From Lytechinus pictus (lineage: Eukaryota), in contig NC_087260.1 of assembly GCF_037042905.1 (NCBI RefSeq), positions 21,638,001 to 21,702,000 on the forward strand: a DNA stretch of 64,000 nucleotides. Reading direction: 5' to 3'. Positions 74 to 22,775 of the stretch are shown here, one piece after another; the stretch's first letter is position 1; each line of letters starts with the position of its first letter. A model generated the notes under the pieces. That model worked only from the letters and a program-made list of their open reading frames with translations, ran no database searches and was not told where the DNA came from. Both the position numbers and the translations under genes were made by a program.

Positions 74-198
74 CGTATTCTACAGCATTATATACTGGGA
101 CTCCCTCGGTGTGCGCTACGAAGCCAACGAAGGAGAAGACCACGACACCACAGTACATACTCGTCAACACCTTCAAATAAGATACGATCATACAGTCC
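74..198 (-). CDS. SLC6 transporter exon 8 (TM7); the gene continues beyond the left edge of the window
   Basis: DCMIVSYLKVLTSMYCGVVVFSFVGFVAHTEGVPVYNAVEY(G). TTTCAG acceptor and GTAAGT donor. Confidence 0.9.
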
Positions 199-240
199 CT
201 GAAATCATCAAGTTAAAACAAGGTAAAAATTATGCCCATC

Positions 241-1698
241 CAGTGGCGTAACCACGGGGGGCATGGGGGGCACGTGCCCCCCCCCCCCTTCGGCTGGCAA
301 AAAAAACGGGGAAAAGGAGAAAAGAGGGAGAAAGGAAGAGAAACGTATTTTATAATTATGTTATGTTACTGTACATAAGAAACATTTTTTTCATAACTTT
401 ATGAAACATTATTTGCTCATGGCCTATGTCTTCATTGTTTCTGGTGCTCACATTGTCTGTTTAACTAGATATATAATAGATCAAATATTTTTTCGGAAAA
501 CTACAGTTTTCAAATATATTTCCTCGCACTTCAAGTTTTTATTGTTTTATGTAGTGACATATGCTCCTTTTTCATGACGATTTAAAGTGACTGCCCCATT
601 TTAAGGTCTTAATATAAAACATTTCCTGTCCGTGTTCACGTTCGCATTAGTGGATTGGTGAGATATGTCTGCTCTTCATGAATTCCTAAAATCTGCTCTT
701 CATGAATTCCTAAAAATTCCCAATTTCTGATCTGAATATCAAAAATTTTCAGCTCGCACTTCGCGCTCGCATCATTTGGTTAGTGAAATGCGTATGGTAT
801 TGGCGAATTCCTACAAACAAGCCTTAGAATGCCCCTCTTCAGGTCTGAATTTCCTAAATTTTCAGCTCGCGCTTCGCTCTCGCAATATTTAATTATTGAG
901 ATGCGTATGATAATCATAACAATGGCTACAAAAAGTGCTTCATGTGTTTAGATGTAATTCTAACAAAATCAGCAAGCGCTTGTCACTTGCATTAGATGAC
1001 TATGGTGAGATATGTATATTCTTTAATGGATTCCTTATAAAAATAGTCCTTAAAATATCCCTGTTTGGAGGCAATATATACAAAAAATTCAGCTAGCGCT
1101 TCGCGCTCGATTAGTGAACTACGTATGGTCTTCGTGAATTCATACAAACAAGTCTTAAAATGCTCCTCTTCAGGTCTGAATTTCCTAAATTTTCAGCTCG
1201 CGCTCGCAATATTTTAGTAGTGAGATGCGTATGTTAATCATGATTTCAATGACTACAAGTGCTTCCTGTGTTTAGATGTAATTCTAACAAAATCAGCAAG
1301 CGCTTGGCACTCGCAATAGATGACTATGGTGAGATATGTATACTCATAATGGATTCCTAAAATATAGTCTTTAAAATGTCCCTTTTTGAGGTCAATATAT
1401 ACAAAATTCCAGCTCGCGCTTCGCGCTCGTATTGTTTGTTTAGCGAGACAGGTACTATCATGATAACAAACATTTGCTTATAATGTCCCCTTTTTGGTTT
1501 GAATATCAAAAATTTTCAGCTCGAGCTTCGCGCTCGCATTATTTGATCAGTGAGATACATATCCGTTTAATGGCACCATCCTTAAAATGTCTCTATTAGG
1601 TCAATTTACCTGGCAACTGAGCGCGCGAAGCGCGCTCATTAAGTGAATCAATTTTTTTGCTGGTGCCCCCCCATGCCGTGACCCACGGTACGCCGCTG
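241..1698. mobile_element. Non-autonomous DNA transposon (CAGTGGCGTA...TACGCCGCTG TIRs) with internal repeats carrying GCTCGCGCTTCGCGCTCGC
   Basis: TIRs visible. The same left end recurs at 63850. Confidence 0.8.
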
Positions 1699-2034
1699 CA
1701 TGTACCCATCAATAGATTAAAATTGTTAACAGAAATCCTGTTTCCCTCCTATTCTAATTAAACTTCTCCCACGCACTGTGACTGCATCAATATTGCCTAT
1801 AGTATCTTGACAATTATGAATATATTTTCATTGTATTTGTATGAATAGAAGTCATTTAAAGTATTTTTAAAAATCCCTACTTTTTCGTCTCAACCCCCTT
1901 ACCAGAGACTTCAAAAAGGCTAACACAGTTTTAGATTTGTGTTTTCAACTCAATTCATATACAAAAAGAGAAAAAAAATATTGCCGTCATGCGAAACACG
2001 AAACAGTATTCTTACTGTAAACATACACTCTTAA

Positions 2035-3149
2035 CCCTAAAAAGACTGGGGGCTGATTCAGACCACCCCTCCTCGACATTTTTCGCGGTAAATCTGCCGC
2101 ACAATTTTGTTTGACCGCGTCGCTCCCTGACTTTTTACTTTCAAGTCTCGCACAACTTTTAAGACCAAAATTGCGACCCTCGGGTACGCATTTCCGAAAT
2201 GACGCAACATTTCGTAAGTGCATGCAGACCCGAAATTGCTCAAAAATGTGAATTCGTGTACAAAACCAATGCAAATAGTGTTTTAGCCAAAAGTCATAAA
2301 TGCATCATTACTTTTCCTTTTACTGAATAATATCAATTAATTTCATCTTTATTATGGTCAATATACAATATCTATTAAAAAAAACAATAAAAAGTCGAAA
2401 ACCAAGAAATACATAAGAAACTGAAAAAAATATAAAATACATAAGAAAATAAACATGACGTTGAAATCTTTTCAAAACATTTGATCAGATTCCTATAAAG
2501 AGTCTGTGGACCAAAAATTAGCATTCTAGGGGCATTATTTAGTTAATTAGAGCAAAATTTTGATTTTACGCATACATTAGTATGATTAATTAGCAATGAG
2601 ATTTTTCGCTGAATTTAATCTTATAGTTTTAAATATTATGCCATGGGTCACGCGCGTGCCAATTTTTGTTGTGATCGCGCGCTCGACGACCGAGATCATA
2701 AAATACGTGTTTACACTTAATCGGCTTTTGCATCGGCTTTTTCATAGCGTGTAAACGCGATTAACTTGCATCGGCTCGCGGTTCAGAACCGGCAATTTGC
2801 ACCACCAAAGTAGTAGGTTCAGAACCGCGAGCCGATGCAGAATCGGCTTTTTTACTACGTGTAAACAGAAAGCCGATTCTGCATCGGCAATTGGTGCGCA
2901 TTTCATTTACTTTTCCATTGTGACGTAATTGTAAGTGCACGCGTATCATTTCAGGTTTTTGCATCGGCTCGCGGTTCTGAACCGCGAGCTGTAACAGCGT
3001 GTAAACGCAGTGCAAGATAAACCAAAAGCCGATTCTGCATCGGCTTTTGGTTCTGAACCATATGTTCTGAACCAAAAGCCGATCAAGTGTAAACACGGTA
3101 AATGGGGGCTGAATCAGCCCCCAGTCGAAATAGCCCAGTCTATTTAGGA
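2035..3149. mobile_element. piggyBac-like MITE with TTAA target duplication
   Basis: TTAA|CCCTAAAAAGACTGGG ... CCCAGTCTATTTAGGA|TTAA. Confidence 0.8.
2706..3097. mobile_element. Palindromic MITE nested in the piggyBac-like element
   Basis: CGTGTTTACACTT(A)ATCGGCTTTTG ... CAAAAGCCGATCAAGTGTAAACACG; internal GCATCGGCT and GGTTCAGAACC repeats. Confidence 0.8.
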
Positions 3150-3587
3150 TTAAGACTAGGGTGTTAAAACCGACAACACTTGATGTCCCCAGGGAAAAAC
3201 ATCCTGAGGTGTTGAAATGACACCCTACAGTGTGAACATAACACCAAAGATTGTGAAAGTTAAAACCAAAGGTGATGTAATAACACCATTGTTGTTCAAC
3301 TAAAACTGTAAACTTAACACCGGAGTATAATAACTGGTGTAGTCATCCACATACTCCGGTATTGCTAATTCCATTTCGCCCCCATAATTCAAACAAAATT
3401 AATAAGAAAATATCAAAAACTTCAGAGAAGCTTCTCATTTACTCTCGTCGATACCTCATAATCTAGTTCTTTGTCAAGTCTTGCAAATATTAATGAGAAG
3501 CAATGTGAAACTACCACAGGGATATATTTATTCTTTAATTATATGACTGTAAATGTATTATTGAACTAGAAGTCGATCGCAACAAAC

Positions 3588-3691
3588 CTATAAAAATTGT
3601 AGTGGAACTTGTTAAAACTCCCAAGTGCTGTGAAGGCACCAAGTCCAATTGAAAAGGAATAAACAGCCTCTTTTCCAGCAGCTATCCATAC
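3588..3691 (-). CDS. SLC6 transporter exon 7 (TM6)
   Basis: Manual translation gives VWIAAGKEAVYSFSIGLGAFTALGSFNKFHYNFY(R), which aligns to the VWxDAAxQIFFS...SYNKFxNN pattern. Confidence 0.9.
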
Positions 3692-4403
3692 CTTGATAAA
3701 CATGATATAAAACACTAACATGTTGCATGATTATAGATTAGTAATATAAAGGAATGATAAAGTTTACCCTTAACTTCTATATATTGCTAGATTTCATCTT
3801 CTTTATTCAAAATTAATGACAAAAATAATGCACAACCAAATTAATGTGGGTTATAGGCCTATACTCATGTTATCTTGCTTTTTTTCTATTCATTAATGTC
3901 ATTTGGTTCATTTTTGTTTTAAAGTCTCGCGCAACTTCTGAGACCACAATTTGCGACGCCTGGGTAAAGTGTTCGAAATTACACAACATCATGTAAGTGA
4001 ATGTAAGAAAAAATTGCTCTAATGATTTCACGCAAAAAGCAATGTGAATTTTGTTTTATATAGCCAAATTAAATGTAGCCTCCTTTTTACTGATCAATGT
4101 TGTTAGTGAACCAAAGTAAAATGAAAAAGCAATTAAATACATAAGTAAACATTTCGATACAGATTTTTTCATAACAGTGCATTTGATCACGATCCTGGCC
4201 ACACGGAGTATCAAATACCTAGTCCCCACATACTGTCATAACTTGCGCCACGAGTTTAACGGTGGTCTTAATCGTGGAGTAGTCATAGTGATCATCGTAT
4301 CAGATCGTACTCAGATTTATAATTATCAGATCAGTCGTGACAATCGTATAGATCGTAGAAACAGTTTGAACGGTTCGAATAAAAAACGCGGTCAGTTACG
4401 AAA

Positions 4404-4680
4404 GGTCAATCGTGGCCGAGTGGTCTAAGGCGCTTGGCTATATACATGGAAAGTCCGGGGTTCGATTCCCGACCAAGGCACCTATGCCCGTGAGCAAGGC
4501 ATTTATTCGAAAATGCTCTTTTATCCTGCATTCAAACAAATGGAAAAACGTGCGCACCTAGTTACCAAGAATGCGTATAGTACATATTCTTGGTAACTAG
4601 GTGTGCACTTGTTTTTTTTAAATCGTGGCGTTCCTAAAAGATCGACAGAGTGGGAGAACGTATCAACTAAGGAATTAGCA
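4404..4680 (+). mobile_element. tRNA-derived SINE
   Basis: Pol III A box TGGCCGAGTGG and B box GGTTCGATTCC, followed by a TGAGCAAGGCATTTA body. No complete cloverleaf. Confidence 0.75.
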
Positions 4681-4994
4681 GGTCAAGGGCTTAAAGATTC
4701 ACAGCCAATATCTAATTTCAATCTTAATTGAAAGAAAACAAAATAAAAATAGTTTGTGCAATATAGCGATGTAACCATGTTTTTTCTACCATAATGCAAC
4801 ATTTTGCCGCGATCTGTGGTCGATATTAAAGGGACATAATGCCCTCTCACTTCGGACTTAAAAGAATATTTAAAAAAATAGGAATTGACTATTTGGGTTA
4901 GGATTCTGATGCCTATGCTATGAAAATACCTGTCATTCAGAACATTATACATGGCTAGATAGAGAAAGGAAGATGCATAAGATAAAAATATTAC

Positions 4995-5129
4995 ATCAAT
5001 ATCTCTGAGTCTGTGCACGTCTGGAAAGATAAAAAACAACAATCCCTCAAATGCTCCGGGTAATGTTACCCCACGTATCAGCAACGCGAAGAGGACGACG
5101 TATATGAAGGGAACGTTGAAATAGAACAC
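4995..5129 (-). CDS. SLC6 transporter exon 6 (TM5)
   Basis: VFYFNVPFIYVVLFALLIRGVTLPGAFEGLLFFIFPDVHRLRDID, containing the LLIRGVTLPGA signature. Confidence 0.93.
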
Positions 5130-5544
5130 CTGCAAAATTATCAGAAAAACAGCGAATTATAATAATGTTTATCATCAAACATGCAACTATTAAACAATTC
5201 GACTTTTACATTTGAGGACGTATTGTGACATCTCTCAACTGCATTTTTATTTCCATTTTTGAAAAGGCGCAATTGAATTATCCACCTCTATGAATTATAT
5301 TTGTCATCAAAATTTGGTGATTGCATATAGGGGCCTATAAATGATTCAAATGAAAATTCTATCCGCATTTCTTCAGTTTAATTCAATGAGTGTGAAATTG
5401 TTTAATAAAATAGAAATTTAGGGGGAAAACAATAAAAGCGATATAAATTCAAATGAATGAATATACTCATTTTCAGCTTGCAGTATTTTACAATTAGGAT
5501 CTTACAAAATGACAAACGGGAAAGCAAAAATGGATGAATGTTAC

Positions 5545-5686
5545 CTTGGCCATCCACTTGACGCCCTTCCACAGGCCAAAGTATATGAGTGTCCAAACGA
5601 GGAAAAGACATAAGGCCAGATGCCAAACAACCCCTCCAACGTCGAACATTCCTCCTGATACTTCAGGTTGACCGCGCACTTTGTGA
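5545..5686 (-). CDS. SLC6 transporter exon 5 (TM4)
   Basis: HKVRGQPEVSGGMFDVGGVVWHLALCLFLVWTLIYFGLWKGVKWMAK. Canonical splice sites. Confidence 0.92.
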
Positions 5687-6188
5687 CTAGAATATAGGAA
5701 ATTAATTCTCTATTTGAGCAAAGTTTCATCGTCAATTGTCTTAAAAATTAATAATAGGCACAGAATGTACGGAGGGCAGAAAAGCTAAAATTAGTAATGA
5801 AATACAAACTTACAATATAATGACGTATTCAAATGATATTAAAATCCTCTTTGCAAACCATGAAGTTGCCGATCATTAGCAGTAAAAAAGACTAGTGATT
5901 TGTATACTTAACTCGGATTCGCCCTTACCACTAACCCGTCTCTGTGCATTAACCCTAAAGGACGTTTCGCGCAATATTTCCAAAAACGCAAAAAAATAGC
6001 GCCGAAATGCTTTCGAATTTTTTCTTTTAAATCTCGCGCAAATTTTGAGACCAAATTCGTGACATATACATCGCGACACCACATGAATTTTTACGAGACA
6101 ATATGTCATGCCGAATATAATTTTTATACTTTGTGTATATACAAAGTCTGTTATTATTTTTCATGCACCACCTCTGGTCATTATTGTC

Positions 6189-7856
6189 CATAGGCGGATC
6201 CAGGGGGGCCCGAGGGGCCCGGGCCTCCCTATTGGCGGAGCAAAAAAAGAAAAAAAGGGGGAAAGAAAGAAAAAAAAGAAAAAGAAGGGAAAAGAGAGGA
6301 GAGAAAAAGAAGGGGAAACATTAGAGGAGGAAGACGAGTAAATAAAATAAGATGAGGAGAAGACTTCGAAAATAATTTTAAACATCTTTCATGTCGGGAT
6401 ATAAAATTTTTGCTCGCGCTTCGTGCTCGCATTATTCATATTTACAAAAGTGCTTTAAATGTCCAGCTTTCAGGCCATACTATTAACAGATTTCGCGCTC
6501 TCATGCTTTGGAAGAGTAATAGGAAGATAGTCATCATTTTCATATGATGACATAATGTCCTTATCCCAGTCCTATGTCAAAACTCAAAGTAATAATAATG
6601 AAACACATCGACTGTTTTTTAACTGTGATCTATATCTACCTCACAATTTTTCCTACAAAATGCTTGAAATACAGAGCTTAAATTGACCCTTTTTCAGATC
6701 GGAATATCATGTATTTTTAGCTCGCGCTTTGCGCTCGCTTATTTGATTTTCATGATTAGAAAGGTATTTAGGATACCCAAATTCTAGGTCGAAATCTGAT
6801 ACACATGGGCGCATGTTTATTCAGATACGCAGCTTGTTCTCTATTTAAATCATTATCCAGTTTCAGATTACGATATCAAAAATTGTCTGTTCGTGCTTTA
6901 CGTTCGTATTATTAATGTAGGAAAATTTCCAATTACTCATCCTTTTGATGATTTACAAAACATGAATAGAGTGTCCAGAATTGTTCTGCTCGCGCTTCGC
7001 GCTCGCATCAGTTGTTAATTATATACTGATCCTTTTCACGATTACAAGAAAAGTGCTTATAATTTCCATTTTTCAGGTAGAAATGTCAACATTTTCAGCT
7101 CGCGCTTCGCGCTCGCATTATTTGGTATTTGAAATATGTAACGTCTTGATGGCTAATAAGCAAACATATCCTTTTTTATATTAAATCAAAACGTATATTC
7201 AAAATGTATTTTTAAAAAATCTGCTCGAGCTTTGCGCTCGCATTATTAATGTAGGAAGATTTCCAATTACTCATCCTTTTCATGATTTACAAAATATGAA
7301 TAGAGTGTCACATTTTTAGGTTTAAATCTCGATATTTTCGCTCGCGCTTCGCGCTCGTATCAAGTATTTCAGTTATATACTTAATCCTTTTCCATTCTTC
7401 AGGAAAAATGCCAATTTTTTGCAGCCGTTAACAGATCCTTTTTGATCATATATCAAAACGTATATTAAAAATAAATTTAAAAAATTTCTGCTCGCGCTCG
7501 CATTATTTGATAATTGAATATGTAACGTCTCCAAGGCTAACAAGCTGCCGTTAACAGCTCCCTTTTTTATCAGATCAAAACGTATATTAAAAATTTCTGC
7601 TCGCGCTTCCCGCTCGCAGTAATTATTTAGTTGGATACACATCTCGTTTAGGATCATAAACAAAATTAAAAAAAATTTAATTTGAAGACAAAATACATAA
7701 AATAAACAAAAATCTCGTGCTTCGCGCTCGCACTTTTTTAATAATGCTTATGATATTATATATATATATTACTTCGAGCGGCCGATCGGGGAAAATGTGG
7801 CTGAAAAAAAAAATTCCGCCCCCCCCCCCTATTGGCAAAGGCTGGATCCGCCCCTG
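6189..7856. mobile_element. Non-autonomous DNA transposon with internal GCGCGAAGCGCG-motif repeats
   Basis: CATAGGCGGATCC ... GGATCCGCCCCTG TIRs, with a flanking TTGTC duplication. Confidence 0.8.
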
Positions 7857-7881
7857 TTGTCATTGCTATAAATCATCTTAC

Positions 7882-8072
7882 TTCCAAAATTCTTGCGACG
7901 GTTTGGTTGTGTAAGGCCTATTACCGCATTGGTCGTAGTCATCAAATGACGATACTGGTCTCACATCCCACACATATTCGGATGATGGTTGGTTGGTTGG
8001 AAGTTGTGGAAGTTGTGGTATATCACTCTTCTTGACGGCCAGGTATGTTCCGTTGATGCAAACCCATTCAGA
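7882..8072 (-). CDS. SLC6 transporter exon 4 (EL2)
   Basis: SEWVCINGTY...TTKPSQEFW, matching the SLC6 P..EFW motif. TTTCAG acceptor, GTAAGA donor, phases consistent. Confidence 0.88.
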
Positions 8073-9114
8073 CTGAAATGTATTCAACATATACCATTTT
8101 TATTTTTCTAACATCTTTTTCATCATTATATCATTTAATATCATTACCATTTTGTTATTTTGAATACTTGTATTACTCTCTTCACCAACATCAGCATCAT
8201 AATCATCAACATTATCATCATCATCATAAAAATAACATAATTTTTGTTACTTTACATATTATTATTACTTTCATCACCAATAGCCATCATCATCATCAGA
8301 AAAAAATATCTGAATCTTCCGTTGGGGATCGATTGTGTAAGAAAAGTTGTCACTTTTTTACAATTACCATAAGCAGATCCAAGGGAGGCGTCGAAATGGC
8401 CATGGCTCCCTTTGGAGGTGGCACTTCTCCAAAAAGGAAAAATAATACGACATAAGTAGGAAAGGAACTCAAGCTCGCGTCGATTGTTTAATTAGTTATC
8501 CATCCTCTTGATGACTACAGAAAATGCTTAGAATGTCCTGTTTAAAGTCTAAATCTAAAGAAAAAATAGCTTGTGCTCCGCCCTAGTATGTACTTCATTA
8601 TTTTTATTACAAGCGTGCTTAACCGTCCAGATTTCAGGTCGGAATATTTAATTTGCTTCGCCTGTTAGTTAATTTTTTTAATTCTGCTCGAGATTAAGGT
8701 AAGAGCTCAGAATATCCAGTTTACAGGTGAGATAGAAAAGAAAGCTCGCACTTTGCGATCGCATCAGTTGCTTAGTTAGGTACACATCCTGTTCATGGTT
8801 GCAAAAGTGCTTCGAAAGACGAATCATCAGGTCGGAATATCATTTTTTTCAGCTCGCGCTTCGCGCTAGAATTGATTGATGAAATATGTATCATCTTCAT
8901 GAATCACTGTAAACATCCCCTGCTAGTATAGGTATTGCATTGAATGCTTGGCATCATATTTCTCGACATTTTCCCATCCTTGATTTAAATCCGATTTTGA
9001 GGAAAATGACAGTTAAAACTTGTATGAATTAAACTCTTTTTTTTTTCATTCTACACGAGGCATGTAAAAATCGGGGGGGGGGGTATATATCCATTATAAA
9101 CATGATAAACGTAC

Positions 9115-9278
9115 GTCATAATCAAGGCAGGTGGGCGTGTTCCATTCATGATCGCATCTCTTCCATGGAAGCTCATCGCCAATGCAAGAGCTGTAGAGAT
9201 AGTATAAACTGTAGGCCAAGATGACATTATAGTAGATGTTACGCCAAAATAACACCACAGTGGAAGCTACACCAACTC
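9115..9278 (-). CDS. SLC6 transporter exon 3 (TM3 and start of EL2)
   Basis: GVGVASTVVLFWRNIYYNVILAYSLYYLYSSCIGDELPWKRCDHEWNTPTCLDYD, containing the LPWxxCxxxWNTxxC signature. Canonical splice sites. Confidence 0.93.
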
Positions 9279-9712
9279 CTAGAAAAGATCAAAGTAAAAT
9301 AAATGAAAAAATCCTACATGAATACACATACATTACAGAAGGCCCCTATCCCTCCCACTTTTTCAAATTCAAGTTCGAATTCAATTTGATTTCATTAAAA
9401 TATATGCTCATCATAATCAGTTCATAACGAAATGTATGAAATAATGACAGATAAAATGAATACATAAAATGCAGTACCCATTAATAGACCATTCACGCAA
9501 AGAAAAAATATATTGCAAAATGTTGAATTTGCTGATGAAATCTGAAAGCAGGATATGTATTCATCCACTCGACGTATGATTAACAGCGGTTATATTGTTC
9601 ATTAGGTTTCGGTTTACTTCCAGTCGTGCCAAATCTAAACATGATAATTATGTACAAACGTGCGAACTGTTAAGAAAATCAAAAGAGCTAGGATTGTTTG
9701 ATAAAATTATCG

Positions 9713-9859
9713 NNNNNNNNNNNNNNNNNNNNNNNNNNNNNNNNNNNNNNNNNNNNNNNNNNNNNNNNNNNNNNNNNNNNNNNNNNNNNNNNNNNNNNNN
9801 NNNNNNNNNNNNNNNNNNNNNNNNNNNNNNNNNNNNNNNNNNNNNNNNNNNNNNNNNNN
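9713..9859. other. Assembly gap
   Basis: Run of N. Confidence 1.
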
Positions 9860-10299
9860 TTCAACAGGGTAGCCTCTTCAGTTGACAAACTGCTATCACT
9901 GAGGGCCCTGCACACAAAAAAAACAATGTATATACATATATCAAATGGCAGACAAGATATAGCAATACATATATGAACATAAAATTGTTTGACAATAAAA
10001 GCATACGTAGAAACATCGATTCATCATTGGCGATGCCACAGAATTGGAGTGAGTGAGAGGGGCAAAGATAGGGAGAAAGTGAGAGAAGGAGAGAATGAGA
10101 CTATAAGACAGGGAAGGTGCGGAAAGAGAAAGAAAGAGAAAAGGACAGCAAGATTTGTAAGGGTGGGAAGGAAAGGGGGTAGCTCGACATAGGAGGGTCG
10201 AAAGGGGGGTACAACCATCCACACTCGATTATAAACATTATCGGAATATAAACAAAGTTAACAACTCACAGATATTAAACAATTACTAAACAACGTTCT

Positions 10300-11480
10300 A
10301 AATAACAAATAATAGGCTAAGGAAGTTTCTTAAATAGATGAATGAATGAAGCTGATCTCATGTTAGCACTAAGAAGATTCCATTTCTTTGACCCTAAGTA
10401 CTGAAATGTTCTTTTACCAATCTCAGTCATAATTACACCTGTTTGTTGGAGGGATGCAGTTGATTTTGAATGGTTTCAATCGCGTATTGGGGTTTGGTAA
10501 AAACTCACACAATGTATGTGAATCCCATCTTGAGTGCATGTTTTCCCACTTTAGTGCTTGGTGTAAATCATGGATATGGGTTCTAGGTTGATGAGCCCCC
10601 GATGTCATCCTGGCAAGTCTATTGTGGAGTTTTACAAGTCTATCATAGTAACCCGACTGAGCAATTGGACCAACAACTTCACAATAGTCGAAAAGAGGCA
10701 TTACTAGTGAGGTGCATAACAATTTGAACATGAAGTTTGGAATACATTCTTTCGCCGATCTTCTGACATGTTTAAGAAATCCAATTCTTTTTGATATTTT
10801 CTTTGCCGTGAAATCGATGTGATACTTATATGACAGATTTAGATAGACTCCTAAATATTTGAACTCTTTGACTCTTTCAATTTCTTCACTATTTATGTCA
10901 AGGTGAATGTTGTTCAAGGCACAAAGGCGTTGCTTTGTGCCAAACACGCACCATGAACTTAGTTTGCATAACGTTGAGTGTTAGTTTAAAATATTTCAGC
11001 CATGTTGATATATTGGTATTTGCGTTTTGCATTTTTACACGTTCCATCAAACAAAATAATAGCATCATCTGCATGCATATCCACTTTTATTTCGTTGGAG
11101 GCTTGGGTGACTGAGAGTGGTAATGTATTAATGTACATAATAAACTTTAAGGGGCCAATTATTGACCCCTGTGGCACCCCATACATGAGAGTATCCACTT
11201 GCGAGGTTTCCCCATTCACTTAAGAACTGTGCTTTCTTTCATGGAATTAAAACGTAAACCAATCAAGTTCTAAGCCACATACTCCAGCATCTTTAGGTAC
11301 TTTTAACAAAATCTTATATATACGATCCACCGTATATTGAATGCATTTTTCATGTCGTTACTTTGGCTTTTTTCCAGTTTGTTGGAAATATACCCGTTTC
11401 AAGAAATGTATTCATACTTGAGGGAGTACTAACATCGGGACGAGCTGCTTTTAGTAGTTTTAGGCGTTATTCCATCAAGT
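10300..11480 (-). mobile_element. Decayed LINE (CR1/L2-like) reverse-transcriptase fragment
   Basis: YGVPQGSIIGPL, HADD and FKYLGV motifs across frameshifted ORFs 10986-11219 and 10423-10947. Confidence 0.9.
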
Positions 11481-11715: not shown

Positions 11716-11847
11716 CTCTGAATAGTGGGCAAATCTTCCAGGCCCTGATGGATCCCGACGATGTATATTGACCAACAACCGTCTCCAAGAACATAAGAGG
11801 GATCGCAATTAACATCACAGCCAGTAGGTATGGGATGAAGAAAATAA
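11716..11847 (-). CDS. SLC6 transporter exon 2 (TM2)
   Basis: Manual translation gives (F)[43 protein letters not shown](G), a frame not shown in the ORF track. TAG acceptor and GTAAT donor; phases join exons 1 and 3. Confidence 0.92.
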
Positions 11848-12124
11848 CTAGAGGAAGAAACGTGATAATGATTAAAAAAATCTCGATTCACCTTCATATT
11901 CGAGGTAAGAATTCACTACATAGCAAGAATTACCTCCATTTAGTCGGCCTCGCTCTCCTTTGCCTCTTTTTTAATGCAATATAATTCTCATCACATTACT
12001 CGATCGCTAAATCACTGCAACTAATCAACTTGATGGGTATATATCAAAAGGTTAAATATGCTGATTAGACAGCATATCATTAAATATAGATATAACGAAT
12101 GGGACATTGGTGTGTAAATGTTAA

Positions 12125-12596: not shown

Positions 12597-12882
12597 TTGT
12601 TTGAATTCAACCTGACCTGTGGGGTCTGGTAAAAGAGATAACATCTGGAGATAACACTTTTTTGTGTTTTATTATTAGACCTGTATGAAAAAGAGAAAAT
12701 AATGAACTTATAAGATTAAATCATATAATTTAAGCTTATTATAAATTTAACGCTAGGTTTAAATATTATTGTATTCTGGAACAATCGGGGAAGATTTTTT
12801 TTAACAGTATACTCTAAGCACTTTTTTGCGAGAGGTATATGTACAAAATATGGTGTTTTAGAGTACTGGTCAAAAGAACAGA

Positions 12883-12888
<6 letters not shown>

Positions 12889-12946
<58 letters not shown>
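12889..12946. repeat. (TA)n microsatellite
   Basis: Read directly from the sequence. Confidence 0.95.
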
Positions 12947-12948
<2 letters not shown>

Positions 12949-15119
12949 GACGCGCTTGAAATGAGATACATTAAATTGTACATCTGGGTCCTACAATGTG
13001 CTGGGAACTTGTCAAATCATGTCAAATCAATGACGCAGGAAATCCCGTTTCCTTGAGCGGAAGTAAAACATGAAAATGTCTGAAAATACTATAAGGACAT
13101 AAGTATCTAGATATACATCAGATATAAATGTATTACACACACCCACGCGCCCGCACCCACACAACTCCCTGCTCACACACACGGGCGCACACGGTGATGG
13201 ATTGCCAGGACTTTAATACGCTTCTAATCGAATTGTATATGTGGCATGTGCATATGCACAGATTGCACAGAGCGTTTATTATAAAAGGGGCAAAAGTTAA
13301 TAATCTGGCTCAATCGTGAATCATAATGGTTAGTCGCGTGCATTTGAGTGTCCGAAAATCCACACAGCTTCAACACAGGGAACAGTCGTTTTCACGAGCG
13401 TAATATTGCAACAATTCGGGTATTATTAATATGTCTCACACCAGAATTACAGGATTATGAAAATTTTATTCACTTCATTTAATTTTATGTAAATATAATT
13501 ACAGTTAATTGACTATTTACGTCTCGCTTTTCATTTGAAATTGTCCATGTTCACAACTCTTGCTATGGCAAACGGTCTGAAACAACCCATATGTCGAGAC
13601 ACTGGCACCTTTGTTTTCCCATTGAAATATCCCTAAGGGTAAAAAAAGGTCGAGATTGATTGTCATCTCAATGTTAAATTAAATCACCTACATGTTGATG
13701 TATTATACTTTGTGACTGGTATAATGGTTACATCTCATTTTTCTCCACAAATTAGAGATCGAGCAGGCAGAACATGTCACATTTCGATGTACAATGTCAC
13801 GTGACTAATGTATGATAGTTTCCGTTCCTATAGACCCTTGAAACAGTACAGTCCAAACAAATCAATTAACGCATTTAATGTTGAAAGTAACAATGTTCTT
13901 GTACTATAAGCTTTGCCTTCTGATATTTATAATATAGCTACATGTTGACAAAGCAAATATTTAGTAGTCCGGAATTGATTTTGATTTGCAATAGGGAATG
14001 CGTATACGTATCGCCAGTGTGTTGTTTTAGTATTATTATGATGATTCGATGTTGCAAGCGCAAAGTGTAAGCGCACCACCTAGTGATCATGTTAGGAGAC
14101 AGTGCTACTTTCTGCTATGGTTTGCCATCTAGAGCACTGAGCTCCGCCTTGTTTGTATGATGTTAATCTCGCCGGCATACATACCAATCACATTTCACAT
14201 GATCGGGAATGCGAGGAGAATGAGAGTAAAATGGATGATAGTCACGAGATTGATAATCATAACACATTAGGGACCACAGTCAAACAAGTATTCACTATCA
14301 TACCCAAGGAAGATGATGGATATGGGACAAGTGATAGAGAGATGAATGAATCTAACAGTAACAATGGTAAATCTCGGAATGAAGACCGAAGAGATGAGAC
14401 TAGTGATGGTGAGGTGTTTGAAACTAACAAAGGTGAAACGAAACCATGCAATGTAGATGATGGATACGAGAGTAGTGATGGTGGAGGTCATGACTCTAAC
14501 ATAGTTGATGTGAAACAATCCACTGCTGATGATGGATACATGACTACCAGTATTGATGGTGATGTGAATATAAGAAACGGTGCTGACATGAAAGAATGGA
14601 ATGAAGAGGTTGAGTATGCATCTACTTCAACTAGTGATAGTCTGGTTTATGGAAGTGACCAATGTGATGTGAAACAATGGAATAAGGAAAATGGATATGA
14701 AGCTAATGTTGGTGTGGTTAATAAAGCTAATGGAGATGATGTGCTTATTGGTCACATGGGAGACGTAAAAGAAACAAGGAAAGATAATGTAGTGTCTTAT
14801 GTTAGTGATGTAATTGTTCAGGATACCGATGCTAGTGTGCCCTCATTGTTCCAAGAGTGTACAGTTACAGACACTCATGAAAGCAGTTCATGTTCTCCTC
14901 CAGTTTCACGTTTGAGTGATCTTCTTCACTCCATTGCATTGATTGTTGGTATGGCGATGTTGCCTTTACTACTCCGAGTGGATCGAGTTGCTCTCCACTT
15001 TCTGCCGATGATTGTCAGTCTTTGGTAATTTGGGATTGTTGCCAATCCAATATGATCTACAGTTTCACAGAGTCCCTTGATTTGGATCTTAGTCGGAACT
15101 ATGGTTCTCACTCTTTGTC

Positions 15120-15295
15120 TGATGTGACAGTGTTGTCTCACTTGACTTTGCCGGATGTGACAGTTTCGCCTACCTTGACTCTGTCTGATGTGACAGTTAC
15201 GCCTACCTTGACTTTGCCTGATGTGTCAATTTTGCCGAACGTGACTTTGCCTGACGTGACGGTATCGCCTAACCTGACTTTGCCTAACATGTCAC
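15120..15295 (+). repeat. 33-bp tandem repeat (TLPDVTVSPxL in one frame)
   Basis: About 5 units of TGACTTTGCCTGATGTGACAGTTTCGCCTACCT. Confidence 0.85.
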
Positions 15296-15699
15296 CTGAT
15301 ATGCTACTGGATTGATGCATTGGTAACAACCGTGTCGTTGACCGTGGAGGTACCGTGCTGCCTCTTGATCAAAGGTTTGACACTCCCGGAAGTGTTGACA
15401 GCGTGTCCGCTACACCATCGGCCGATTCGGTGTTACCCTTCGACGTGAGTAACCGCTACAGGGCAAACACCGGCGTAACCGCTATGTCTTCTTGCCCAGC
15501 TAACGTCAGCAGCAGTAGCTCCAATGCGCAAGTTGTCTGTCCGGCGAGAGCACCATATGTACTGTGGATGGGTTGATCTTGCAGATCTTTCAATCGTTTA
15601 TCCTGCCAGCGTCAGCTACTACTGACTGTCAGTACTCGACTAGCATCTCAGTCGGTATTAGCCATGTTCGTTCCATTTGGACTGATGTCGCGTGCCATA

Positions 15700-16420
15700 C
15701 TCGCCCTCCAGATCAGCCCCATGCTATTCCAGAGCATGGTTCTGCTGATCTGTCTGTCCCTGAAGGATGTCATGGTCGTCCGCCAGACCGGCCCCATGCT
15801 AGTCCAGGGCATGGTCCTGCTGATCTGTCTGTCCCTGAAGGATGTCATGGTCGTCCGCCAGACCGGCCCCATGCTGGTCCAGGGCATGGTCCTGCTGATC
15901 TATCTGTCCCTGAAGGATGTCATGGTCGTCCGCCAGACCGGCCCCATGCTGGTCCAGGGCATGGTCCTGCTGATATGTCTGTCCCTGAAGGATGTCATGG
16001 TCGTCCGCCAGACCGGCCCCATGCTAGTCCAGGGCATGGTCCTGCTGATATGTCTGTCCCTGAAGGATGTCATGGACGTCCGCCAGACCAGCCCCATGCT
16101 AGTCCAGGGCATGGTCCTGCTGATCTGTCTGTCCCTTAAGGATGTCATGGTCGTCCGCCAGACCAGCCCCATGCTAGTCCAGGACATGGATCTGTCTGTC
16201 CCTTAAGGATGTCATGGTCGTCCGTCAGACCAGCCCCATGCTAGTCCAGGGCATGGTCCTGCTGATCTGTCTGTCCCTTAAGGATGTCATGGTCGTCCGC
16301 CAGACCGGCCCCATGCTAGTCCAGGGCATGGTCCTGCTGATCTGTCTGTCCCTTAAGGATGTCATGGTCGTCCGCCAGACCGGCCCCATTCTAGTCCGGG
16401 GCATGGTCCTGCTGGTTTGT
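15700..16420 (+). repeat. 75-bp tandem repeat, ~9-10 copies (ADLSVPEGCHGRPPDRPHASPGHGP)
   Basis: Near-identical units, one with an internal deletion near 16190. Later copies carry a GAA-to-TAA change. Confidence 0.95.
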
Positions 16421-16587
16421 CTCTCCCAGTGGAAGAGCTTCGCAGATTAGGCCACCATCACCTGCCTATCAGTGGTACAAAGACATTTTTCACTTAATTC
16501 CATTTCTGCTCGGCTAGCTTTCCCAAGGATAATGGCAACAGAGACATCTATGTGTTGGATAGTGACTATTGCGTATGTGAACATATA

Positions 16588-16900
16588 GGCCCGCATTCAC
16601 AAAGGTGGACTAAAGTTATACCGGGGTTAAATTTAGCCCGGGGTTAGCTAACACCCGGGTATAAAGTTAGTCCACCGCGCTATTCACAAACGGTGGACTA
16701 ACTAATCCATGGACTAACTTTAGCACCCGGGGTTAAATTTAACCCACGGTTGAGTTATACCCCGGTATAACTTTAGTCCACCTTTGTGAATCGCAAAAGT
16801 TAGCCCCTCGGTGCTAACTTTTGTCCATGGATTAAAATGACGTCAAATGACGCGTTTTATACCCCGGTATAACTTTAGTCGACCTTTGTGAATTCGGGCC
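16588..16900. mobile_element. MITE with long TIRs (Harbinger-like) inside the LTR-like element
   Basis: GGCCCGCATTCACAAAGGTGGACTAAAGTTATACCGGGG ... CCCCGGTATAACTTTAGTCGACCTTTGTGAATTCGGGCC. Confidence 0.8.
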
Positions 16901-18934
16901 TATGTTTTTATTATGAGTTGACTCCCAATTCTACCATGTGATTTTGAGGAACGGACTAACAGCATTTTCATCGCTTGATTCGGAACTGTTTCTTGATTTT
17001 TTAATCAACCAATGAATATATGCCTAATTGATTTTATATACCAATTACCATATGATTTGTGTTATGTTTATTTGCAGGTATATTTTGCTTAAATCATTTT
17101 ATTGATTGTGATTGTGATTTTATGTCGGGATATTTCATTATATTCCTTTGCAGGTAATTTCGTGTTACTGGATTGCATTTTGGTATGTGATTTTGATTGA
17201 TCACAATAAACGGTTTCATGATGTTTTTTATTTATGATGTATTTTGGTGAATGCTCCTAGGTTATGGGTGTTGTTGATTTCATGGTAATATGTTGATGTT
17301 GCTATTGATGTTTATCTAACATTTGCTAATTGTTGACTTGTGCCTAATGATCAATGACACAATGATTTCTCCTGTATCTTCATAACCCCTTTTTGTATTG
17401 TTGTTTTGAATGATATTTAAGCACTTTTGTCAGACAGTGTAGTTTTTATCTTTTTTTGTGCCATCCTTTTTTATGATACACAGATGTTTTTGCTATTCAG
17501 GATGAGACCGTTGAACTGTGTATTTAATATGCTAGTATTTGTTATCTGGATTGGGATCATTGTGTTTTTTCCTTCACTATTTGGACAATTGCCTATATAT
17601 ATATATATATGTGTGTGTTTTTTTCCTCCGTGCAGGTTGATGCTTTTGTTTAATTTGTGTCGGAAATTGGTTTTTAGTACACTGAGCCTTGTGTTTTAGA
17701 GCTGTAGATTAGGGTCGAATTTTTGCTCTTATGAATTCGCTGCCTATATAGGGATGATGATTTGTTGTTAACCACTTTTGGAGCCCACAAATGTGTTTTT
17801 CCCATTCTAGATGGAGAGAGATGGGAAGTGGTGATGCGATTTGATGTTAATTGTGACCTTTGTTGTGTTATGCTAGTTTAGTATTCAACACGTTATGATA
17901 TATTGGTGTCTAGATTTATCTGAGTCTTACACCAGCGAAGGTCTAACCCTTTTTATTTAATAGTGAGCTAATTACGAATCATCATGATCTTGTTATACAG
18001 ATTATATTGTAAAAGATGAGGGAAAAGTAAAAGGCAGTCACGCCAGTATGTTGTTTTAGTATTATAATGATGATTCGATGTTGCAAGCGCACCATCTAGT
18101 GTTGGTCTCTTGGCCATGGTTATTAAAGACAGTTACACGTAACCTCAAAGTTGTCTCGTTTATTTACTTCTTTTTCATTAAGTTGGCCCTTATTTACCCA
18201 TGGCGTATAGTATAAACTAGCAGGCTAGCATCGTCTGCTACGTACCATAATAGCCACCTTTCGCAAACCTCAGGGACGGTAAGATTAGGGTCCCCTAACA
18301 CAAAAATTAACGATTAATCGTACATTCGATTTTCACGAGTAATTGTAGATTAAAATCAATGGAATCAATTATAGAAAACTGTTCTACATTCATTGCTAAG
18401 CTTTGTGATACAGGCCCTATAGATGTGCTTTTCGTGTGCAAAATTCTTTCACGCGACACCCGTTTTCATGCATTGTACGTCTGGTCATCATCGTATATGC
18501 CCCCTGAGCCGGCGGCGAACCTCTATATACTAGCTATGACAGCTGGCTGGAGATATTCGAAATGCAGGGCCCACAAAAGATTATGACATGGATAAGAAAG
18601 TGTTTTTTTAAACAAATCGAGTACATATTGAGTGAGGAAAAACTTACTGAATTAAGGCTTAGATATAGATCATTACAGTCCATCGAATCGATATTGCATT
18701 TAATGTGGATTATTGGTGGATCACTGGCAATTGATTCCATGGGTCAGAATGATGACCTCTCCAGCTGAAACCATTTCGCATGCGTTGATATGTACACAGC
18801 ATGTATACGTCTGAATACCAGTCGAAATTGCGGGGTTTTTTCTTTTGTTTACTCCTTCTACACAAACAATATGCCTCTAGCACACAATGTAATGGGCATT
18901 ACTTTTCCCAGAAATGGGGGATTAGATTCAAATT

Positions 18935-19248
18935 CCCGCGGGGGGGGGGCCATGCACTTCCATTGATGAGTGGATACCAGGCACGACCATGCGGTTTCGA
19001 AAAGCACCCTAAACAAGGGAAGCAAGGCTTTTCCAGATTATTAAAATGCATCCCTTTTAACAAGTATTTGGCTTGTGAAACCCTACAAGTATTGGAAATA
19101 TATCACTTTTTTCAGTATTTTAAACATCGGTTTTGACACCATTATAACGTTACAAAGGCCTATATACGTAACGTACTTGCCCACTCTGTCCCCTTTTACG
19201 CGTGGCGCGCGCCTGGTATCCACTCGTCAATGGAATTGGCCCCCCGGG
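18935..19248. mobile_element. MITE of the CCCGGGG-CACTTCCATTGAYGAGTGGATACC TIR family
   Basis: Both TIRs present. The same family occurs at 19976-22325 and 43859-44912. Confidence 0.75.
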
Positions 19249-19789
19249 TGGCCTCTAGAGCTCTGGGAGGAACCAAATGTGGCTCTGGAAAGTCGTCCTA
19301 CATCGGATATATCGCTGTTACCATAGAAGCAACCAGAATTTTGCATACGAAACGCATATTGAATGTTTCCGTTGCAGATGTGAAACGAAAAAAATATCAT
19401 GTCACACAATTTGCATTGCAGGACAGAGTTTTACGACCATGACGACGGGCCCAAAAGTCTCTTCCAAAATCAACTACCGTCGTAAATAAGCGTTCGCGTT
19501 CTCCAACGAAAGGTCGGGAATGAGCGAGCATGACCAAGACAAAACCATGTGGACCGTAGCCAATAATCTAGGCGGAGACTGCGAATACGCAGTCACATTT
19601 CGTCTTTGCCACATCATAGGTATCGCTTGCATTCAGCATATAACAGCAAAGACAATAACTGCAGCCTCTGCCTAGAATAGGCTAGAATGTCCAGGGTATT
19701 AAATATATTTTTAAAGGGACTTGGTCGATAGATATCCCTTCCTGATTTTTTCTTCTGTGCTGATTTTTCCACATATTATGATAATAATA

Positions 19790-19962
19790 ATAAATTGGTG
19801 CTAATATAACAGCGCATAAACAATTAAAACTACCCTATGCGCTTTACATATACAAATTACTCTCCAATATTACAATTACACTAAAACAAAAATAAGTATG
19901 TTTTCAAATGTCTTTTAAATGAATCAACAAAAGTACATGATCTAAGATGAATTGGTAAACTA
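19790..19962 (-). mobile_element. 3' end of an L2/CR1-type LINE
   Basis: Encodes NSLPIHLRSCTFVDSFKRHLKTYLF, followed by a GCGCATA...TATGCGC stem-loop and an (ATT)n tail. Confidence 0.7.
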
Positions 19963-20343
19963 TTCCCCCCCCCCCCCCGGGGGGGACATTTCCATTGGCG
20001 AGTGGATACCATGCGTGACCAAAAAAAAACATGTAAAAGATATCTCTTTTTCATGATAGGGCAGGTATCGTATGAAATGTAAAAGGGTGTGAAAAACACT
20101 AAAATAATGGAAAAAATTGCATATATTTTGCTAGGAAAACTACGAGTTTACGGTCCAATTTGCGAGGGTATATACAAAAAGAATAATTTAAGGATGTACT
20201 TTTTCCCCCAACACCGTTTTGGGTCCGTTTTGAGGGAGGTGTGTCGGGTGCATAGAGATACATCTCTATGGTCGGGTGGTACTAAAAAGGTAAAGCCGAC
20301 GTCCGTGATATATAGGGGTCAATTCAGGGAATACATTAGGAGG

Positions 20344-20677
20344 CAGGGGCGTCGATCCATTTTTCAGATTGGGGGGGGGGGGCAAAATCACGAATCAACG
20401 TTCCAAAGGCGCTCGATCACACAAAACGAACAAACTCACCCACACGCACCCCTACACATACATAGGCCTTGATCTATATTATATACATTATATGCATATA
20501 TATATAAGCGCGAGCTGACAATTTTTATATTCCAATCTCAAAAGCGGACATTTTGAGAACGATATTAAATAAAGAACGAGTTGGTATCTCAATGTTTGCC
20601 CCCCCCCAATATTTTCATTTTTGGGGCGATCGCCCCCCTGCCCCCCCCCCCCCCTCCACCCAGGATCGACGCCTATT
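20344..20677. mobile_element. hAT-like MITE
   Basis: CAGGGGCGTCGATCC ... GGATCGACGCCTAT, with an 8-bp TTAGGAGG target duplication. Confidence 0.8.
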
Positions 20678-20899
20678 TTAGGAGGTCAATTCAGGGAATA
20701 CTTGTCAAGGGTACCGTTTTGTTTCCAATACTTGATAAGGGTATAGGGTTTCACACGCCAATACTTGTTAAAGGACAAGTCCACCCCAACAAAAAGTTGA
20801 TTTAAATAAAAAGAGAAAAATCCAACAAGTATAACGCTGCAAATATCATCAAAATGGGATGTAAATAAATAAGTTATGACATTTTAAAATTTCGCTTAA

Positions 20900-21481
20900 A
20901 GGGATGGTCCGGGCTGAAAGTATTTATAGATTAATAAATAGAGTAGAATTCACTGAGCAAAATGCCGAAAATTTCATCGAAATCGGATAACATATAACAA
21001 AGTTATTGAATTTTTAAATTTAGCAATATTTTGTGAAAACAGTCGTCATGAATATTCATTAGGTGGGCTGATGATGTCACATCCCCACTTGTTCTTTTGT
21101 ATTTTATAATATGAAATTAGGTTTATTCAATTTTTTTCCTCCAAGAACTAGAAAAATTGGATTGACAACTGATTAAGTGCATTAGATATTTATTGCTGCA
21201 ACTTATTTCATTATAAGGGAGACATAATTATTCACACAAGTATGAAATAATGAAAAAATATGATTTCATGTAATAACATAAGAAAACGGAAAGTGGGGAT
21301 GTGACATCATCAGCCCACCTAATGAATATTCATGATGACTGTTTTCACAAAATATTGCTAAACTTTAAACTTCAATAACTTTATTATTTGTTTTCCGATT
21401 TTGATGAAATTTTCGGCATTTTGCTCAGTGAGTTCTACTATATGTATTAAGATATAAATATTTTCAGCCCGGACCATCCCT
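20900..21481. mobile_element. Kolobok-like MITE with ~190-bp inverted arms
   Basis: TTAA|AGGGATGGTCCGGGCTGAAA ... TTTCAGCCCGGACCATCCCT|TTAA. Confidence 0.85.
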
Positions 21482-21518
21482 TTAATTAATTTCACACAAC
21501 AGTTATATGCACATCCTG

Positions 21519-21650
21519 GGGCCCGTAACACAAAGCTTAGCACTGATCGTAAAACATTTTTCTACGATTGATTCCATTGACTACAATGTACAGTCAATCG
21601 TGAAAATCAAGCGTACGATAATTAATCGCTAACCTTTGTGTTACGGGACC
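21519..21650. mobile_element. PIF/Harbinger-like MITE
   Basis: CTG|GGGCCCGTAACACAAAG ... CTTTGTGTTACGGGACC|CTG. A related copy lies at 18288-18417. Confidence 0.8.
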
Positions 21651-21659
21651 CTGGTCGGT

Positions 21660-22101
21660 CAGGGTGCTACATAACTTTTCAGAAGCACTTGCCCAGTGGG
21701 GCAAGTAATTTTAAAATATTTGGAATATACTTGCCCAAAAATCTATTTCACTTGCCCGAAAAATCCTTGAAAAAAAAGTTTTACCTCTTCGAAAGAAAGT
21801 TTTGCGGTTTTACAAACCATTGACCTTTTTCTCTCTTTTGACATGAACTGACCTACCTTGTTATTGCATTTCTTTTTCCAAAGTGATTTTATCTTGCCTG
21901 CCATGACCAAAATTAAGGTCAATATCATATTATATCAACCCTAATATTGGCCACTCAACTGTGAGAATTTTGCTTTCTACTGTGTGAAATTTGCTTGTCC
22001 AATTCGGGCAAATAGTTTTGGTCTCTATTTCAAAACACTTGCCCAACTCTAACTTTTACTTGCCCCGGGCAATCGGGCAAGTGCATATGTATAGCACCCT
22101 G
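21660..22101. mobile_element. MITE with CAGGGTGCTA TIRs and TTGCCC subterminal repeats
   Basis: TCGGT duplicated on both flanks. Confidence 0.75.
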
Positions 22102-22654
22102 TCGGTTTATGTAAATGATGGGAGTGGGTAGGGTGTCACACGCCAATACTTGTTAAGGGGCGCATTTTCAGAATATGGAAAATACGTGTTTAGGGTGCTT
22201 TTCGAGACCCCATGCCCCATGGTCGCGCATGGTATCCACTCGTCAATGGAAGTGCCCCCCCCCCCCCCCGGGTTATCGAAACCCCATGGTCACGCATGGT
22301 ATCCACTCGTCAAAGTGCCCCCGGGACTATTCCTTAATTTGGGACCGCAAAATTCGAAGCTAGCCCCGCCCCTTGAAACAACTCTAGGAATGTGTAAAAT
22401 TATGCCACCCTTATAATAATACACACCCTATAACTAGTAATACATCGGACTATCATAGTGTCATCATAAACATGCATGGGAAGCTTCGGAATTCCGCTGG
22501 ATCGTCTTTTCTCCGGGTCTTTTCTACCCACTGAGATAGAATTTATCATGTATATATACACGTAGTACTGGGCTATATAGTCTACTAATATATACCACTA
22601 TATACAGATCAAGGACCTGTATAACTAGCAATGTATAACGAAATATATACTTAC

Positions 22655-22775
22655 ATCCACCGTTCCTATAGCAGAGGGAAGGCAAGCGAAACATATTTTC
22701 AAAACAGGCTACAAATCCGATGTTCGTCGCTAAGAAATCTAGTCTCCAGCTCCATTTTTCTCGATCCGTTGGCAT
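22655..22775 (-). CDS. SLC6/NSS sodium:neurotransmitter symporter family transporter, coding exon 1 (N-terminus and TM1)
   Basis: Reads MPTDREKWSWRLDFLATNIGFVACFENMFRLPSLCYRNGG, matching the SLC6 RexW..DF...G....N..R.P.LCY.NGG pattern. GTAAGT donor at 22654, phase 1. In-frame TGA just upstream of the ATG. Confidence 0.9.

Follow-up and report, generated by a model that had tools for sequence, protein, structure and literature searches.

What does a transporter of the SLC6 family do once the residues that hold its ions and its substrate have been replaced together? The question is raised by a gene on the minus strand of a 64,000-nucleotide stretch of the genome of the sea urchin Lytechinus pictus (G000:C16:21638001-21702000, referred to here as the window; positions without a prefix are counted from its first letter). 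The gene has 14 exons and a product of 605 amino acids, and it ends to the left of the window. An additional 40 kb on that side was also read and yielded six further exons, which run from transmembrane helix (TM) 8 to the C terminus. The spliced 14-exon product is identical to the database protein P0270 (XP_063967790.1), already present in RefSeq under the automatic name "betaine transporter-like", which reflects similarity only and is not a functional assignment. P0270 is an expressed member of a sea-urchin-specific branch of SLC6, with the LeuT fold and the gates kept and the ion and substrate sites rebuilt. Judged from its residues, it is probably no longer a standard Na+/Cl--driven carrier. 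We favor, with a probability of roughly 45%, a carrier that is independent of ions or linked to protons and that has a new substrate; three rival readings, rated less likely, are discussed where the relevant evidence appears.

Fold, gates, and altered sites

By profile, predicted fold, and gates, P0270 is a member of the SLC6/NSS family. At full length it matched the Pfam profile SNF (PF00209) with 489.8 bits (cut-off of 27) and an E value of 1.3e-146. An AlphaFold2 model built on a 60-sequence alignment (pLDDT, 87.8; pTM, 0.87) confidently predicted twelve helices in the LeuT fold, with helix breaks at residues 23-24 and 308-313 that correspond to the unwound TM1 and TM6. The best Foldseek matches were TauT, GAT1, and BGT1, at a target-normalised TM-score of ~0.9. 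The outer gate is kept as R30/D465 (R104-E493/D in SERT, the numbering used here for site positions) and the inner gate as R5/D422 (SERT R79-D452), as is E62 (SERT E136); SERT Y350 is Phe (F321) in P0270. The retention of the gates suggests that the protein still cycles.

In both sequence and fold, the closest proteins were those of the GAT/BGT1/TauT/CT1 group (human BGT1, 9lnm; TauT, 9j7n; GAT1, 7y7w), at 36 to 40% identity and with a phmmer E value of 2.5e-131 to BGT1. Like them, P0270 has 12 TM helices, the cysteines of extracellular loop 2 (EL2), R104, Y121, E136, Y176, S336, and S372. Unlike them, it has other residues in place of the two TM1 glycines, the Gln of the Cl- site, the Asn of Na1, and the Asp and Ser of Na2. 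On this sequence evidence, it fails the defining ion-site features of the Na+/Cl--dependent subfamily and is an ortholog of none of these proteins, BGT1 included.

The altered positions had first been assigned by eye, in a reading of the window made from the sequence alone. HMMER alignments of TM1 with DAT, and of the entire protein with human BGT1 at full length, were ungapped through TM1, TM3, TM6, TM7, and TM8. A shift in register that would make the sites canonical was therefore rejected, and the substitutions listed in the sequence-only reading (Cys at 98, G100E, I172R, Q332E, F335Y, and N368K) hold in these alignments and in a MAFFT alignment that includes 189 full-length GAT/TauT/BGT1/CT1-type relatives and from which column conservation was taken. 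The four motifs that it quoted also lie on the minus strand where it had placed them. The substituted columns are 97 to 100% conserved among the 189 canonical relatives, except for I172, where all 189 have an aliphatic residue or Cys.

TM1 is encoded by exon 1 (22655..22775), which begins with the start codon (22775-22773) and a very short N terminus and covers SNF profile positions 1 to 49. Within its motif, GFVACFENMFRLP (22718-22680), which starts at G20 (22718-22716), Cys24 (22706-22704) occupies site 98 and Glu26 (22700-22698) occupies site G100, both of them Gly in 189/189 relatives. N27 (22697-22695; N101) and R30 (22688-22686; R104) are retained. The helix reads GFVACFE where BGT1 has GEIIGLG, and the GxxGLG substrate cradle is absent. 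In TM2 (exon 2, 11716..11847), both Y47 (Y121, in the Cl- site) and E62 are retained. Exon 3 (9115..9278) carries TM3 and the start of EL2; there, in the motif WRNIYYN (9246-9226), R97 (9243-9241) stands at SERT I172 (GAT1 L136), a column that is Leu in 157/189 relatives and otherwise aliphatic or Cys, while Y101 (Y176) is retained and the EL2 cysteines, Cys126 and Cys135, are present. The TM6 motif EAVYS (3670-3656; exon 7, 3588..3691) brings Glu303 (3670-3668) to SERT Q332 (GAT1 Q291; Gln in 189/189) and Tyr306 to F335 (183 Phe and 6 Tyr), next to a retained S307 (S336). In TM7, encoded by exon 8 (74..198), the motif SYLKVLTS (182-159) has Lys339 (173-171) at SERT N368 (GAT1 N327; Asn in 188/189) and Val340 at S369 (Ser in 184/189); T371 and S343 (S372) are retained. 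The sequence-only reading had N101, R104, Y121, Y176, S336, and S372 as kept, which the 189-relative alignment confirmed. It had also called for the TM8 exon, located to the left of the window (exon 9, G000:C16 21635687-21635575). Once retrieved, this exon revealed Asn407 at D437 (Asp in 187/189) and Met408 at S438 (Ser in 189/189), and no premature stop was found downstream.

In GAT1, the ligands are N66, S295, and N327 for Na1, D395 and S396 for Na2, and Y86, Q291, S295, and S331 for Cl-, with N327 and S328 nearby (PMC10137170). In P0270, the Na1 side-chain set N101/S336/N368 is incomplete, with N27 and S307 kept and N368 replaced by K339. The Cl- site (Y121/Q332/S336/S372) keeps Y47, S307, and S343, with E303 for Q332 and V340 for the neighboring S369. 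Both side-chain ligands of Na2, D437 and S438, are replaced. P0270 still has G20, A23, and I404 at the positions of backbone ligands. LeuT uses Thr at the Na2 Asp position, and Na2 is the site that drives conformational change in the LeuT fold. As for the substrate, the alignments place the two replaced TM1 glycines as those that cradle the substrate carboxylate, and R97 as the replacement of a pocket-lining aliphatic residue.

An urchin clade and a proposed order of changes

Relatives were collected by searching 1.84 billion representatives, with exon 3 as the query, and by three word-indexed searches. The clade comprises P0270 and its L. variegatus ortholog, P0153; L. pictus P0272 (contig C13) and its partial L. 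variegatus ortholog, P0358; and S. purpuratus P0002, P0151, P0152, and P0155. By BLASTP, identity within the two Lytechinus ortholog pairs, our yardstick inside the clade, is 91% for P0270/P0153 versus 86% for P0272/P0358. The sister urchin paralogs are 54 to 58% identical to P0270 and have the same short N terminus. Against a clade profile, full-length members scored 928 to 1153 bits versus at most 572 bits for single-domain canonical proteins; two partial models, P0158 and P0160, scored 729 and 600 bits. In a maximum-likelihood tree, seven urchin proteins from Lytechinus and Strongylocentrotus formed one clade with a support of 100, away from BGT1, with P0270 and P0153 sister to P0272. The stem of the clade measures 1.81 substitutions per site, versus 0.41 for the median end branch. 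Protein, ortholog, and clade-profile queries found no members beyond these two genera in a collection that may lack other echinoid proteomes. The best matches from Asterias (starfish), Amphiura (brittle star), and a hemichordate are 37 to 42% identical and canonical at these sites.

Every clade member that covers the columns has Cys98, Glu, Gln, or Asp at position 100, Arg172, Glu332, Val369, and Asn437. Lys368 and Met/Ile438 occur only in P0270 and its L. variegatus ortholog, while five other members keep Asn368 and Ser438. The expectation of the sequence-only reading that orthologs would keep its set of residues was thus borne out across the clade for C98, an acidic residue or Gln at 100, R172, and E332; K368 is confined to the Lytechinus pair. 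From this distribution, Cys24, Glu26, Arg97, Glu303, and Asn407 appear to be older than the split between Lytechinus and Strongylocentrotus. Several sister paralogs have instead lost Y176 (to Cys, His, or Gln) or the outer-gate Asp, and the clade is thus diversifying at its core.

According to our model, Glu303 on TM6 would first have given the clade ancestor a permanent negative charge in the Cl- site, accompanied by compensating changes. The carboxylate of E303 would occupy the Cl- site or exclude the ion from it, making the clade Cl- independent. Later, in the Lytechinus lineage, Lys339 would have placed a permanent positive charge at Na1, and Na2 would have been allowed to degrade. The ammonium group of K339 could provide the positive charge that Na1 normally carries, forming a pair with E303, E26, or both, and the degraded Na2 site would leave little or no Na+ coupling. 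The outcome would be a carrier independent of Na+ and Cl-, whether facilitative, exchanging, or proton linked, that moves a substrate different from GABA, betaine, and taurine, with E26 and R97 either recognizing that substrate or partly filling the pocket. Fixed charges in place of Na1 and Cl- are plausible on the residues present; every step from a residue replaced to an ion replaced is one that we infer.

The same distribution bears on a rival reading, in which P0270 is still Na+ coupled and has only acquired a new substrate. Here C24, E26, and R97 would retune specificity, Na+ would bind at Na2 through N407 and backbone carbonyls, K339 would be structural and lie outside the ion site, and only the Cl- dependence would be altered. 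Since five of the seven clade members keep Asn368 and Ser438, the ancestor of the clade could well have used Na+ coupling. The presence in P0270 of N27, S307, Y47, and S343 and of the backbone positions G20, A23, and I404 is consistent with this reading, as is the finding that GAT1 mutants D395T/C and N327A/C retain some Na+-dependent activity (PMC10137170). P0270, however, has lost both a Na1 ligand (N to K) and a Na2 ligand (S to M), in addition to the change from D to N, and a Lys ammonium beside Na1 should repel Na+. We regard continued Na+ coupling in P0270 as unlikely.

Most of what is known about how LeuT-fold transporters gain and lose ion coupling comes from engineered mutants or from comparing families that are only distantly related. 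At this locus, a stepwise series occurs naturally within one family, from canonical urchin SLC6 proteins, through members with Glu in the Cl- site and Asn/Ser at Na1/Na2, to the Lytechinus gene that adds Lys and Met. The series makes three matters addressable: a TM6 carboxylate for Cl-, a Lys for Na1, and the compensations that rescue an otherwise lethal change from Q to E. A natural Lys at Na1 combined with Glu at the Cl- Gln would surprise transporter specialists. In the literature we found no described urchin SLC6 clade, no NSS protein with Lys in Na1, and no account of the peculiar sites of P0270.

Selection, expression, and points against ion independence

The coding sequence of the L. 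variegatus ortholog was rebuilt from its locus and compared to that of L. pictus by the Nei-Gojobori method with Jukes-Cantor correction. Synonymous divergence (dS) was 0.098 and nonsynonymous divergence (dN) was 0.040, giving a dN/dS of 0.41 (bootstrap 95% confidence interval [CI], 0.27 to 0.63). Well-aligned introns diverge by a similar 0.107, which makes dS a fair neutral yardstick. Over 605 codons there were 49 amino-acid differences and two in-frame indels; the frame, start, stop, and all 26 splice sites are intact in both species. The possibility of a dead pseudogene was rejected because of the full open reading frame (ORF), the intact frame, start, stop, and splice sites in two species, and a CI that excludes 1. 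The view taken in the sequence-only reading that the gene is intact thus agrees with the 14-exon ORF, the intact ortholog, this dN/dS, and the spliced RNA contigs described below. C24, E26, R97, E303, K339, and N407 are identical in L. variegatus. The differences between the species are concentrated in EL2, EL3, and EL4, and they also include V305F in TM6. Within L. pictus, record P0271, which represents the same gene, differs from P0270 by D127G and V305I; L. variegatus and 181/189 canonical relatives have Phe at position 305. Together, these comparisons point to a gene under purifying selection, but with loose constraint.

Expression was followed by mapping two contig-type runs and two raw RNA sequencing (RNA-seq) runs to positions 3500-9400. 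Spliced transcript contigs were present in two studies (X1, 2008 nt at a depth of 25; X16, 2119 nt at a depth of 14). Both join exons 3 to 7 and omit exactly introns 3, 4, 5, and 6, with CT..AC ends on the plus strand (GT..AG when read along the strand of the gene). The position of the exons within the contigs is consistent with a full-length mRNA with a 5' untranslated region (UTR) of ~74 nt and a 3' UTR of at least 114 nt. The transcript piece over exon 3 covers 9115-9280, and the joints on either side of exon 4 are 8072/9115 and 5686/7882. All sampled words of exon 4 were present in eight runs from two studies. Expression of the gene is real, but it is not high or not universal. Three intronic stretches, 7046-7242 (intron 4), 4288-4681, and 5864-6060, were very deep in transcriptome contigs (up to 8560 in X1), and many loose ends occurred at 7091/7123; these stretches resemble dispersed repeat copies that are transcribed elsewhere and lie outside the P0270 mRNA.

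Several observations weigh against the ion-independent reading, and some of them concern its precedents. Cl- independence results when a carboxylate is fixed in the Cl- site, as in GAT1 S331E and LeuT E290, and P0270 resembles LeuT E290, the engineered GAT1 S331E, and SERT S372D/E in that the protein itself contributes a carboxylate to this site, beside Na1 (PMC10137170). LeuT E290, to which the sequence-only reading had likened the change at Q332, nevertheless aligns with SERT S372/GAT1 S331 on TM7 (PMC10137170). That position is still Ser in P0270 (S343, in a column that is Ser in 189/189), whose carboxylate comes from TM6 (Q332E). Glu at Q332 is not proven to be a substitute for Cl-: GAT-1 Q291E is found at the surface, yet uptake and all currents are abolished (PMC2792339). 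Because this single change kills GAT-1, the natural Glu303 must operate in an altered setting or serve an altered function. Na+-independent LeuT-fold carriers have Lys or Arg in place of Na+, as in ApcT K158 and CaiT R262 (PMC6925253), and P0270 shares with them the principle of a basic side chain that supplies the lost Na+ charge. These two residues, which had been taken as parallels for Na1, belong to proteins of the APC and BCCT families and sit at the Na2-equivalent site instead (PMC6925253); in P0270, the Lys replaces a Na1 ligand, and within an SLC6 protein. The Na2 site of P0270 has no conserved basic substitute, as K403 is Asn in L. variegatus; of the four other clade members with coverage of this column, three have Leu or Thr and only P0002 has Lys. 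P0270 therefore lacks the defining residues of both the LeuT-type Cl--independent NSS proteins and the ApcT/CaiT type, although it may share their principles.

The remaining points on this side concern constraint and expression. Of the 134 columns in which the canonical set shows at least 97% conservation, P0270 is changed in 38 (28%), which fits relaxed constraint. In favor of rebuilt sites, the changes are enriched at ion- and substrate-site columns and fall on 8/14 of these versus 30/120 others (one-sided Fisher test, P = 0.017), and those found in every clade member fall on 6/14 versus 12/120 (P = 0.004), in a test weakened by a site list drawn up after the data were seen. The Na2 motif of TM8 differs at three residues between the two Lytechinus species (K403N, I406L, and M408I), which again fits relaxed constraint and is also the pattern expected if Na2 no longer binds an ion. 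A dN/dS of 0.41 is high for a transporter and fits relaxed constraint as well. The raw RNA-seq runs X20 and X21, of each of which ~6% was sampled, had no exon reads and only intronic repeats, which is no firm sign of silence. The loose constraint leaves room for a less interesting outcome.

Such an outcome would be a duplicate drifting toward loss of function, transcribed and still open, in which the changes at invariant sites are degenerative and serve no new role. The proportion of near-invariant columns changed and the dN/dS are in line with it, as are the pocket and Na2-motif residues that vary between Lytechinus species and within L. pictus (V305F/I, K403N, and M408I) and the sister paralogs that lost Y176 or the outer-gate Asp. 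Drift accounts poorly, however, for a 605-codon frame that has stayed intact, with its start, stop, and 26 splice sites, in two species at a neutral divergence of ~0.10, for a dN 2.5-fold below both dS and intron divergence, and for correctly spliced transcripts. Moreover, C24, E26, R97, E303, and N407 predate the divergence of Lytechinus and Strongylocentrotus and have been kept ever since. We consider drift very unlikely.

A third rival holds that P0270 is a non-transporting SLC6 derivative, such as a pseudo-transporter, receptor, or scaffold. E26, R97, E303, and K339 would mimic a zwitterionic substrate plus Na1 and Cl-, and the core would be permanently "liganded" in a signalling, chaperoning, or structural role. 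The charges do run in parallel at homologous positions, with K339(+), E303(-), E26(-), and R97(+) matching Na1(+), Cl-(-), and the substrate carboxylate (-) and amine (+). A Na2 site without Asp and Ser, a very short N terminus, and a moderately relaxed dN/dS would also suit a non-transporter, and the surface-delivered but inert GAT-1 Q291E (PMC2792339) shows what such a protein might resemble. Nevertheless, the gate pairs and E62 were kept along a stem of 1.81 substitutions per site, which is easier to explain if alternating access matters, and no partner or signalling motif was identified in P0270. Loss of transport thus seems improbable to us.

A bolder proposal spans this rival and the ion-independent carrier. 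The four side chains could represent the whole constellation of bound ligands, with Lys339 and Glu303 in the places of Na1 and Cl-, respectively, and with Glu26 and Arg97 in those of the carboxylate and the amine of the substrate, in either an ion-independent carrier or a "self-liganded" pseudo-transporter. The constellation would have arisen stepwise, with Glu303 first and clade-wide, followed by Lys339 in Lytechinus. We hold this proposal to be doubtful; if true, P0270 would provide the NSS family with its first case of Lys replacing Na1.

Gene structure and neighboring sequence

Exons 1 to 8, which lie in the window, were derived from stop-to-stop frames and the surrounding DNA. Three transcript joints with an ambiguity of "cut +2/+3" were placed at GT/AG, which gave a single open frame. 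The eight exons sum to 1114 nt, or the ~371 codons that the sequence-only reading had counted, with no stop and AG/GT at every boundary. All introns of the 14-exon gene are GT-AG, and the ORF is open throughout. Individually, seven of the eight window exons match SNF, in profile order. The exception is exon 4 (7882..8072), which encodes a lineage-specific part of EL2 with an NGT sequon and has no Pfam match alone. Exon 5 (5545..5686) encodes the end of EL2 and TM4, and exon 6 (4995..5129) encodes TM5 and EL3. Beyond exon 9, to the left of the window, exons 10 to 12 lie at G000:C16 21634905-21634768, 21634051-21633949, and 21632824-21632724, and exons 13 and 14 lie at G000:C16 21625170-21625000 and 21623216-21623139, the latter with the stop; all are on the minus strand.

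An assembly gap of 147 N (9713-9859) falls inside intron 2, between exon 2 (ending at 11716) and exon 3 (starting at 9278). The protein junction of these exons, PLFRG|VGVAST, aligns ungapped to the L. variegatus ortholog and to human BGT1, and intron 2 of the ortholog is free of gaps. An exon lost in the gap was therefore rejected, and no coding sequence is affected, since the gap is intronic and the junction is ungapped in comparison to the relatives.

Several introns contain repeats. Intron 1 carries two tandem arrays, at 15701-16427 (75 bp, 9.8 copies, 93% matches) and 15113-15285 (33 bp, 5.2 copies), the former of which gives rise to long repeat ORFs on the minus strand. In intron 2, a 185-codon open frame on the minus strand (10426-10980) resembles a retroelement remnant and has no Pfam match at an E value of ≤0.01. 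Intron 12 (G000:C16 ~21626600-21631900) holds about three tandem units of ~1.5 kb, each with a long open frame of (G/E)NDSDD repeats (203 to 485 codons); because of these units, the intron measures 7.5 kb versus 1.1 kb in L. variegatus. Elsewhere in the genome, another SLC6 gene (G000:C11:27713318-27717932; L001/L002) has unusually large exons, with one 247-codon frame spanning TM8 to TM12, and is canonical at the sites examined.

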